Virus record (IMG/VR): IMGVR_UViG_3300019776_000324
Span: 124,001-188,000 of that record
DNA length: 64,000 nucleotides
Reading direction: 5' to 3' (one strand)
Under the pieces are notes generated by a model. That model did not search any database, had not been told where the DNA came from, and was given only the letters and a program-made list of their open reading frames with translations. The position numbers were made by a program, and so were the translations under genes. The stretch's first letter is position 1; every line of letters begins with the position of its first letter. Positions 60,072 to 62,301 of this stretch are shown one piece after another.

Positions 60072-60147
60072 AACTGTTATAAATAAATTTGTAGATGCCA
60101 ATTGGGTCTACTTTATTACTTGCTTATTTTTAAGGAGAAATTACATG
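60055..60147 (+). promoter_or_regulatory. Overlapping early/late promoter followed by ROSE-like leader
   Basis: TTGACA-17-TATAAATA (60055-85); hairpin 60091-60111; ACTTGCTTA (60118-26) near AAGGAG (60132-37). Confidence 0.6.
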
Positions 60148-60212
60148 TCAAAGCATACCTATCTGACCTAGCGTCAACTCCCAAAAATTTAATCATCTTT
60201 ACAACATAACTG

Positions 60213-60241
60213 TTGACACGGCTACCTATCTGTGTTACAAT
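60213..60241 (+). promoter_or_regulatory. Sigma70-like promoter for groES-groEL
   Basis: TTGACA (60213-18), 17 nt, TACAAT (60236-41). Confidence 0.8.
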
Positions 60242-60283
60242 AGTATGTTGTGGTAACATCATTTATATTTTAAAGGAGTTATA

Positions 60284-60571
60284 ATGAATTTAAAACCTAT
60301 TCACGATCGTATTGTTATTCGATTAGTTGAAGCAGAAACACAAACTAAATCTGGAATTTTTATTCCTGATGCCGCAGTAGAAAAACCTAGCCAAGGTGAT
60401 GTTGTTGCCGCTGGCCCAGGCCGTACTACAGAAGATGGCGTATTAGTTCCAAATCAAGTAAAAGCAGGCGACCGTGTGTTGTTTGGCAAACATGCCGCAA
60501 CCCCAATCAAAGTCGACGGCGAAGAGCTTCACATCCTCCGCGAAGATGATGTAATGGCAATTGTAGAATAA
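60284..60571 (+). CDS. groES: Co-chaperonin GroES
   Basis: [27 protein letters not shown]. Confidence 0.97.
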
Positions 60572-60581
60572 GGAGAATTAT

Positions 60582-62210
60582 ATGACAGCAAAACAAGTAG
60601 TATTCGGCGACAACGGTCGCAATAAATTAGTTGAAGGCGTTAATGTATTAGCTGACGCAGTTAAAGTGACACTAGGCCCTAAAGGTCGTAATGTTGTTAT
60701 TGAGCGTCCATTTGGTGGTCCTCATGTAACCAAGGACGGCGTAACAGTTGCCAAAGAAATTGAGTTGGAAGATAAACTTGCCAACATGGGCGCACAAATG
60801 GTTAAAGAAGTAGCTAGCCGCACAGCAGACAATGCCGGTGATGGTACAACTACAGCCACAGTCTTGGCACAGTCAATTGTCAAAGAAGGTATGAAGTATG
60901 TTGTAGCAGGTCACAATCCAATGGACCTTAAGCGTGGTATTGATCAAGCAGTTACTGCCGCAGTAGCAGAACTTACAAAGATCTCAAAGCCATGCACAAC
61001 TACCAAAGAGATTGCACAGGTTGGCAGTATCAGTGCTAACTCAGATGCAGACATTGGCAACATCATTGCCGAAGCCATGGAGAAGGTTGGCAAAGAAGGA
61101 GTTATCACAGTTGAAGATGGCAAAGGTCTACAAAATGAATTAGATGTTGTAGAAGGCATGCAGTTCGATCGTGGTTACTTGAGCCCATACTTTATCAACA
61201 ATCCAGACAAGCAAGTATCTGAGTTAGATAATCCATTTATCTTGTTGGTTGATAAGAAGATCAGCAATATTCGCGAGTTGATTCCTGTACTAGAAGCAGT
61301 TGCTAAGGCAGGCAAACCCCTGTTGATCATTGCTGAGGATGTTGAAAGCGAAGCATTAGCTACATTGGTAGTTAATACAATGCGTGGTGTACTCAAGGCA
61401 TGTGCTGTTAAAGCTCCTGGCTTCGGTGATCGTCGCAAAGCCATGTTGGAAGATATTGCTATCCTAACAGGCGGTACAGTTATTGCTGAAGAAACTGGCT
61501 TTACACTTGAAAAAGCTACTATTGACCAATTAGGTATGGCTGCTCGTGTTGAGATTGGTAAAGAAAACACTATCATTATTGATGGCGCAGGCGACACAGC
61601 CGCAATTGAAAACCGTGTTAAGTCGATCCGCACACAAGTTAAAGAAGCTACTAGCGACTACGACAAAGAGAAGTTGCAAGAGCGTGTGGCTAAACTTGCT
61701 GGTGGTGTTGCTGTTATCCGTGTTGGTGCTGCTACTGAAACAGAAATGAAAGAGAAGAAGGATCGCATTGATGATGCACTCCACGCTACTCGTGCTGCTG
61801 TTGAAGATGGCATTGTTGCTGGTGGTGGTGTAGCATTGATCCGTGCAAAACAAGCTATTGTTAACTTGAAAGGCGCTAATGCTGATCAACAAGCTGGCAT
61901 TGCTATTGTAGCCCGTGCTATGGAAGAACCTGCTCGTTGCATCGCTTTCAATGCTGGCGATCCTGCTGATGTAATCATTAATGAAATTGCTAGCAAGTCT
62001 GGCAACTATGGTTACAATGCCGCAACCGGTACATACGGCGACATGGTAGAACAAGGTGTTATTGATCCTACTAAAGTTACCAAGACTGCTTTGGTCAATG
62101 CCGCAAGTATTGCTGGTTTGATTCTTACCACAGACTGTTCAATTGCACAGATCCCTGCCAAAGAAGGCCAGGCTCAACCGCAAATGGGTGGCATGGGCGG
62201 TATGATGTAA
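60582..62210 (+). CDS. groEL: Chaperonin GroEL
   Basis: [36 protein letters not shown] tail. Confidence 0.98.
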
Positions 62211-62228
62211 TTAGTAGTTAATTTGTAA

Positions 62229-62301
62229 TAAATATTACTGTGGGTGCCGATGGTCGGGCCCACAGTATTATGTCACTTGCTTAATAAAGGAGAAAACAAT
62301 G
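62229..62301 (+). promoter_or_regulatory. Late promoter plus ROSE-like RNA thermometer of hsp20
   Basis: TAAATA 62229-34; stem TACTGTGGG/CCCACAGTA 62236-67; ACTTGCTTA 62275-83 near AAGGAG 62287-92. Confidence 0.7.

Follow-up and report, generated by a model that had tools for sequence, protein, structure and literature searches.

The window analysed here comprises 64,000 nucleotides (nt), bases 124001-188000 of the 344,244-bp viral record IMGVR_UViG_3300019776_000324, which has direct terminal repeats and is that of a jumbo phage. On the + strand, clpX, the gene for ribosomal protein S21, orf79, a first leader (leader 1), groES, groEL, a second leader (leader 2), hsp20 and clpS follow one another (Table 1). 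Leader 2 has the position expected of a ROSE thermometer, directly upstream of the heat-shock gene hsp20 (ATG at 62299), and leader 1, the subject of this work, precedes an open reading frame (ORF) of eight codons, MSKHTYLT (the mini-ORF), 139 nt before groES. A preliminary description of this locus had reported that both leaders run through TAAATA, a hairpin with a TGCC...GGG core, ACTTGCTTA, AAGGAGAAA and ATG, and had assigned the second to hsp20 and the first to the mini-ORF, all of which we could confirm. Judging from comparisons among phage genomes, leader 1 was left behind by a cassette exchange, has been kept by purifying selection and probably continues to act as a leader gated by heat.

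In both leaders, the last hairpin (hairpin II) pairs the anti-Shine-Dalgarno (anti-SD) sequence CUUGCUU with AAGGAG, the Shine-Dalgarno (SD) motif, and leaves a G bulged out, as in ROSE elements (anti-SD at 60119-60125 and SD at 60132-60137 in leader 1), and in leader 2 an additional GUCA/UGAC helix covers the AUG of hsp20. The best Rfam match of the leaders was ROSE_3 (RF02523), covered over its whole model length, with 33.7 bits for leader 1 (60089-60150, E 2.4e-4) and 30.7 bits for leader 2 (62238-62304, E 1.4e-3) in a 3.8-kb search, both below the gathering score of 43. No further ROSE_3 match was found across the 344-kb genome, so that the check with Rfam ROSE models suggested in the preliminary description singled out exactly the two leaders, at sub-threshold scores. 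ROSE-like is an apt working name, since the leaders combine a U(U/C)GCU anti-SD and a bulged G with an SD lying in the 3′-most hairpin and a hairpin upstream of it, in pairings supported by the covariation described below; their scores stay under the Rfam threshold.

An Hsp20 protein search gave 228 related phage loci, from which 60 distinct leaders were aligned. In this alignment, 8 of the 11 pairs of the upstream hairpin (hairpin I) show compensatory changes on both sides, with stem variants that include GUAGA/UCUAC, GUGGG/CCCAC, ACGAA/UUCGU and GACGA/UCGUC, and the covariation score of 0.22 (at most 0.09 for slid partners) was reached by none of 500 shuffles. The UGCC...GGG core of hairpin I is invariant throughout the family. 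The six pairs of the anti-SD/SD helix are formed in 98.9% of cells, its changes are one-sided and wobble-compatible only, and the bulged G and the U-G pair are retained. The phage leaders are a structured RNA family of the ROSE type, supported by covariation, and in phages they sit before hsp20, dnaK, groES and groEL. The family consensus opens with a sigma-70-type promoter, TTGACA-17-TGnTATAAA, which identifies the TAAATA common to both leaders as its -10 element.

A covariance model built from the same alignment detected three copies in the genome, with 81 bits for leader 2, 70 for leader 1 and 45 for a third. This third leader lies outside the window (G000:204148-204221, L207), upstream of an 82-amino-acid ORF without a PHROG match; its anti-SD is UCGCU, and a separate promoter, TTGCAA-17-TATAAT, belongs to it. 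Searching bacterial ibpA loci with the phage model returned two weak matches only, and no donor was identified. Leader 2 is predicted to be an ordinary thermometer of the phage hsp20. Within the hsp20 coding sequence, a hairpin GGAC-CUCA-GUCC (62317-62330) reads GGAU-CUCA-AUCC in several relatives, so that a synonymous substitution in an Asp codon goes together with a replacement of Ser by Asn, and this hairpin may be a structural extension of leader 2 into the gene.

The origin of leader 1 can be read from related loci (L numbers). In relatives without groESL (L010, L011, L013, L014, L022-L035 and L049), orf79 (S21 in L022) is followed by a single promoter-leader and hsp20, and the same TTGACA-17-TGnTATAAA lies upstream of hsp20. 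In L018-L020, dnaK occupies the groESL slot behind its own ROSE-like leader (dnaK at L018:2971-4935), followed by a second leader and hsp20. Because some relatives carry a single leader on hsp20 and others dnaK in the slot, leader 1 is, on this comparison, a remnant of cassette exchange at a ROSE-led chaperone locus, and P1, the promoter sequence at its start, is by the same reading the promoter that the ROSE-led chaperone gene ancestrally had, kept by leader 1. A ROSE-like leader also precedes dnaK in L438 and L439. In a tree of ClpX, Hsp20, ClpS and ORF254, the deep branches lack groESL and the carriers are interleaved with non-carriers, which implies at least three changes, through repeated loss or exchange by recombination. 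The leader-1 copies cluster as one group (83/86 support), suggesting that the leader-1 arrangement arose once. The promoter at leader 2 is eroded in the window and complete (TTGACA-17-TATAAA) in the relative L204.

The preliminary description had considered a scar of groESL insertion into an ancestral hsp20 locus. The scar itself is borne out by the relatives without groESL, in which hsp20 stands directly behind one leader, although the body of the mini-ORF is not demonstrably derived from hsp20 and, in the window clade, is slightly nearer to the 5′ end of phage dnaK. In this clade, the mini-ORF stubs are weakly similar to the 5′ ends of dnaK genes of phages (p 0.003-0.011 at best, uncorrected), with no similarity to hsp20 seen, and the stubs of L303 and L306, which have a sister architecture, resemble hsp20 (p 0.001); these p values come from 81 comparisons and are hence suggestive only.

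Among nine groESL-bearing phages, mean pairwise identity was 0.55 at 196 four-fold sites of groEL, 0.59 in the spacer after the mini-ORF and 0.73 in mini-ORF codons 2-6, and rose to 0.95 in the anti-SD/SD hairpin of leader 1 and 0.98 in a 13-nt block around the stop codon, CTGACCTAGCGTC. Scans of viral and metagenome contigs, which required the exact block, yielded 31 distinct core variants and 36 extended variants. The ATG and the in-block stop are retained in 31/31 core variants and the SD in 30/31, and the mini-ORF has eight codons in 29 of the 31, with one variant of seven and one of 11 codons. The distance from ATG to block is 19 nt in 34 of the 36 extended variants, the two exceptions being a gain of 2 nt, with which the ORF stops at the TGA of the block, and an in-frame 9-nt duplication, which lengthens the mini-ORF of L403 to 11 codons. 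In the same set, the spacer from the block to P2, the promoter of groESL, takes ten different lengths; at P1, TTGACA is kept in 26/36 and TGnTATAAA in 30/36. In the leader 1 of L007 (L007:1252-1326), three clustered changes destroy the SD hairpin and all else is kept. With hairpin II and the block at 0.95-0.98 and the groEL four-fold sites at 0.55, leader 1 is not decaying: as judged from these comparisons, leader 1, the length of the ORF and the block are under purifying selection, and we infer that a leader kept in this way still works in cis. The conservation of the first leader and its mini-ORF, which the preliminary description had left to be looked for, was thus found in hairpin II, in the block and in the ORF.

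These numbers bear directly on the idea of a neutral scar, a dead duplicate of an hsp20 or dnaK leader with a gene stub that would be carried along through its place between P2 and orf79. Such a scar would fit the clear cassette-exchange origin, the similar stubs of differing sequence in other lineages (as repeated recombination predicts), the loss of the SD in L007 and the possibility that P2 alone expresses groESL. Nevertheless, we consider it very unlikely, as nearby synonymous sites are close to saturation when hairpin II and the block are nearly unchanged, the conserved pieces are short with variable codons between them, which argues against a recently shared tract, and no frame-breaking indel occurs in the 36 variants despite the ten lengths of the next spacer. 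The preliminary description had set a scar against a functional leader peptide, and this proved to be a false choice, since the scar origin is supported and leader 1 is, by the same comparisons, under purifying selection.

The middle of the peptide varies (H/Q/C/Y, T/I/P/S, Y/F/H/N) by changes at first and second codon positions, the middles in L017, L384 and L404 are unrelated, and L203 uses another frame. That the eight residues are the functional product is scarcely credible with middle residues that vary so freely, even though the ORF is always intact and its SD nearly always present.

The promoters around the mini-ORF are arranged in tandem. P1 overlaps the 3′ end of orf79 and was not listed by the promoter scan because its -10 ends in A. 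P2 is present in 35/36 variants and absent in L203, and the groES promoter of the preliminary description is real as a consensus match, at 11 of 12 positions. A terminator scan found no terminator-like site from P1 to groES in the window, so that P1 and P2 would form a tandem pair. The spacer between the mini-ORF and P2 is C-rich and G-poor; in 12/12 phages examined, the 45 nt past the stop have a C minus G of 6 to 11, which places them in the top 0.2-5.5% of genome windows. The sequence TACCTATCTG is indeed present both in the mini-ORF (60156) and in the groES promoter spacer (60223), but as a signal this repeat was rejected: the genome has 1.35 exact direct 10-mer repeats per kb at spacings of up to 100 nt, which puts it at chance level, and it is not conserved in relatives. 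An inverted repeat ACAC...GTGT flanks the P2 spacer (60215-60235), and the P2 spacers of L303 and L306 hold 9-bp and 8-bp perfect inverted repeats that differ by compensatory changes; the inverted repeat at the P2 spacer may be an operator. Sigma-32 and sigma-E type promoters around the block were looked for by eye and rejected, since the spacings do not fit.

Table 1. Leaders, promoters and genes of the locus, in positions of the window
Feature	Position	Strand	Basis
clpX	58417-59613	+	
Ribosomal protein S21	59610-59831	+	
orf79, 79-amino-acid ORF without assigned function	59832-60071	+	
P1, sigma-70-type promoter sequence: TTGACA 60055-60060, 17-nt spacer, TGtTATAAA 60075-60083	60055-60083	+	Sequence
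Leader 1 TATAAATA	60078-60085	+	
Leader 1 hairpin I, GUAGA/UCUAC outer stem, UGCC...GGG core	60091-60111	+	Rfam ROSE_3 alignment, fold, family covariation
Leader 1 hairpin II (predicted thermosensor module)	60118-60139	+	Anti-SD/SD pairing
Leader 1 ACTTGCTTA	60118-60126	+	
Leader 1 AAGGAGAAA	60132-60140	+	
Mini-ORF MSKHTYLT, 8 codons, ATG at 60145, TAG 60169-60171	60145-60171	+	
13-nt block CTGACCTAGCGTC with the TAG stop inside it and a TGA in another frame	60163-60175	+	Identity 0.98
C-rich, G-poor spacer between mini-ORF and P2, variable in sequence and length	60172-60212	+	
P2, near-consensus sigma-70 groESL promoter, TTGACA-17-TACAAT, TG before -10	60213-60241	+	11/12 positions
groES (Cpn10)	60284-60571	+	Pfam PF00166, E 3.6e-31
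groEL (Cpn60)	60582-62210	+	542-amino-acid ORF; nucleotide matches to annotated groL/chaperonin genes
Leader 2 (hsp20 leader)	62224-62298	+	Rfam ROSE_3; fold z -3.8
Leader 2 eroded extended -10, TGtAATAAA	62224-62232	+	
Leader 2 TAAATA	62229-62234	+	
Leader 2 hairpin I	62237-62266	+	
Leader 2 anti-SD/SD hairpin II	62275-62292	+	
Leader 2 ACTTGCTTA	62275-62283	+	
Leader 2 AAGGAGAAA	62287-62295	+	
hsp20, IbpA-like small heat-shock protein	62299-62742	+	Pfam PF00011, E 6.9e-18
clpS	62805-63113	+	

Other lineages also place ROSE-like leaders before the chaperonin genes. In L203, which lacks P2, the leader is the only element ahead of groES that bears a promoter; between it and groES come an ORF of seven codons, the same 13-nt block and a strong hairpin whose tail is U-rich. 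Such a layout recurs in L302, L303, L306, L307 and L311 with mini-ORFs that are unrelated, and terminator-like hairpins with U-rich tails stand at this position in L203, L311, L303 and L306. In at least 20 more distant phage loci, including L321, L341, L347 and L357, a ROSE-like leader sits directly on groES, and in L356 directly on groEL. Several of the distant groES-leader loci directly follow a dnaK-like 3′ end. Contig names among L376-L430, such as TBL_comb47_HYPODRAFT, suggest lake hypolimnion and thus cold water, which raises the question of the temperature range that is sensed.

By comparison with the relatives, a groESL cassette with its own P2 came into a ROSE-led locus and left upstream of it leader 1 and P1, along with a few codons from the gene that had stood there. 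We propose that transcripts from P1 begin just before hairpin I and extend into the groESL genes. While the temperature is low, the anti-SD hairpin would keep the 8-codon ORF from being translated; upon warming, ribosomes would translate it and stop within the invariant block. By terminating there they could help the transcript to go on, either because a Rho entry site is masked or because the RNA is shielded from ending early or being degraded in the C-rich stretch beyond. In this manner, groESL would gain a heat-dependent supplement over the level provided by P2. We give an even chance to leader 1 being such a selected, heat-gated mini-ORF leader on the P1 transcript that aids read-through into groESL, and a functional leader peptide is supported only indirectly, by the apparent purifying selection on leader 1 and the block and by the preserved ORF length. 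A more specific version, in which leader 1 is a thermometer-gated leader-peptide attenuator, with the terminating ribosome deciding if transcripts from the upstream promoter get as far as groESL, and is part of a ROSE-type heat-shock regulon (hsp20, dnaK, groES, groEL and further genes) of a large freshwater jumbo-phage clade, is tentative, and we would sooner doubt it than accept it.

Several observations weigh against a heat-gated leader. Besides the sub-threshold ROSE_3 scores, nearest-neighbour folding gave only a weak, non-significant hairpin II, and the predicted accessibility of the SD was nearly flat from 10 to 48 °C in a thermodynamic melting calculation that is uninformative here. 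No intrinsic terminator was predicted in the window, the idea of Rho acting at the C-rich spacer rests solely on base composition, and P2, being near consensus, could supply groESL without P1. Since L007 has lost the SD, at least one lineage can do without translating the mini-ORF, and the heat-gated model gives no particular reason why the 13-nt block should be invariant.

Alternatively, the hairpins might tune translation or mRNA stability without sensing temperature and be ROSE-like by shape only; in favour of this, both leaders lie under the Rfam threshold, the predicted SD accessibility changes little with temperature, and classical heat shock is rare in the cold lake water suggested by the contig names of relatives. 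The non-canonical pairs of ROSE elements are not captured by nearest-neighbour energy models, and the elements specifically precede hsp20, dnaK, groES and groEL and have retained both features by which ROSE melting is defined, a bulged G and a U-G pair, which makes a similarity of shape alone distinctly unlikely.

The block leads to a different alternative, in which leader 1 is functional without read-through into groESL, either as a short RNA or decoy (a factor might, for example, bind the conserved UGCC...GGG hairpin) or with the block as a binding site for a protein or RNA. The block is invariant in its nucleotides and not in the amino acids it encodes, and contains an inverted repeat, TGAC-N5-GTCA, that can form a 4-bp hairpin UGAC/GUCA. 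In predicted folds it can also pair with both arms of hairpin I, a long-range fold that is the predicted minimum in the window and in L005 and competitive in others, and the family-wide invariance of the UGCC...GGG core would likewise suit a bound RNA. No covariation bears on this long-range helix, no terminator delimits a short RNA in the window, and the constraint on ORF frame and length points to translation. The block as a general, repeated operator or phage promoter motif was rejected, as it is present in a single copy in 344 kb. Taken together, a role of leader 1 as a stand-alone RNA or binding site seems rather unlikely to us.

Leader 1 lies in a proteostasis island of the jumbo phage (58417-63113), one co-directional block of clpX, S21, groES, groEL, hsp20 and clpS in which the stop of clpX overlaps the start of S21. 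The identity of the phage hsp20 product to bacterial relatives is only 41-51%. Between hsp20 and clpS, an inverted repeat AGTGGAG...CTCCACT (62760-62784) has no T-run and was not flagged in the terminator scan.

That a ROSE-type family with covariation is attached, across dozens of contigs from jumbo phages, to chaperones which the phages themselves encode suggests that these phages perceive temperature or proteotoxic stress without relying on host sigma-32. If our reading of leader 1 is true, the conserved mini-ORF copy would be a new use of a thermometer, gating a leader peptide instead of a protein-coding gene, and the 31 natural leader-1 variants provide a mutational series for probing this idea.

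A 2024 survey lists three RNA thermometers in phage genomes, namely lambda cIII, SPbeta blyA (fourU) and a sigma-70 fourU element (PMC11182007). The leaders described here resemble these three as translational thermosensors borne by phage, and differ in that none of the three is of the ROSE type, controls a phage-encoded chaperone or forms a multi-copy family in one genome. Our incomplete coverage of the literature brought up no report of ROSE-like elements in phages or of a thermometer-gated leader peptide. Among bacteria, short two-hairpin ROSE-like thermometers are described for Pseudomonas ibpA (Krajewski et al. 2013, as summarised in PMC13104619). Like these and ROSE_3, the phage leaders have two hairpins, the second of which pairs the SD with U(U/C)GCU and leaves a G unpaired, and in the case of leader 2 an IbpA-type small heat-shock gene follows. 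Unlike them, the phage elements stand in a jumbo-phage genome, with scores under the Rfam threshold and an invariant UGCC...GGG core of their own, and are also found before dnaK, groES, groEL and an 82-amino-acid ORF, with leader 1 before a mini-ORF only.

For the ROSE element of P. aeruginosa rhlAB-R, better translation at higher temperature leads to more downstream read-through, presumably as a polar effect according to the summary in PMC13104619 (Grosso-Becerra et al. 2014). This is a precedent for translation-dependent read-through under a ROSE thermometer such as we propose for leader 1, with the difference that a full enzyme operon is translated there, whereas leader 1 would use an 8-codon remnant for coupling only. 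The arrangement downstream of the thermometer, a very short upstream ORF with its stop in a conserved block and then a C-rich, G-poor stretch, is similar to that of leader-peptide attenuators such as tnaC-tnaA. In tnaC-tnaA, the Rho site next to the leader stop codon is covered by a ribosome positioned at that codon. The mini-ORF differs in having no evident stalling motif, and a role of Rho at leader 1 is hypothetical; at the mini-ORF, temperature would be the signal and would affect initiation by way of the thermometer, in place of the metabolite that acts on a stalled ribosome in tnaC.

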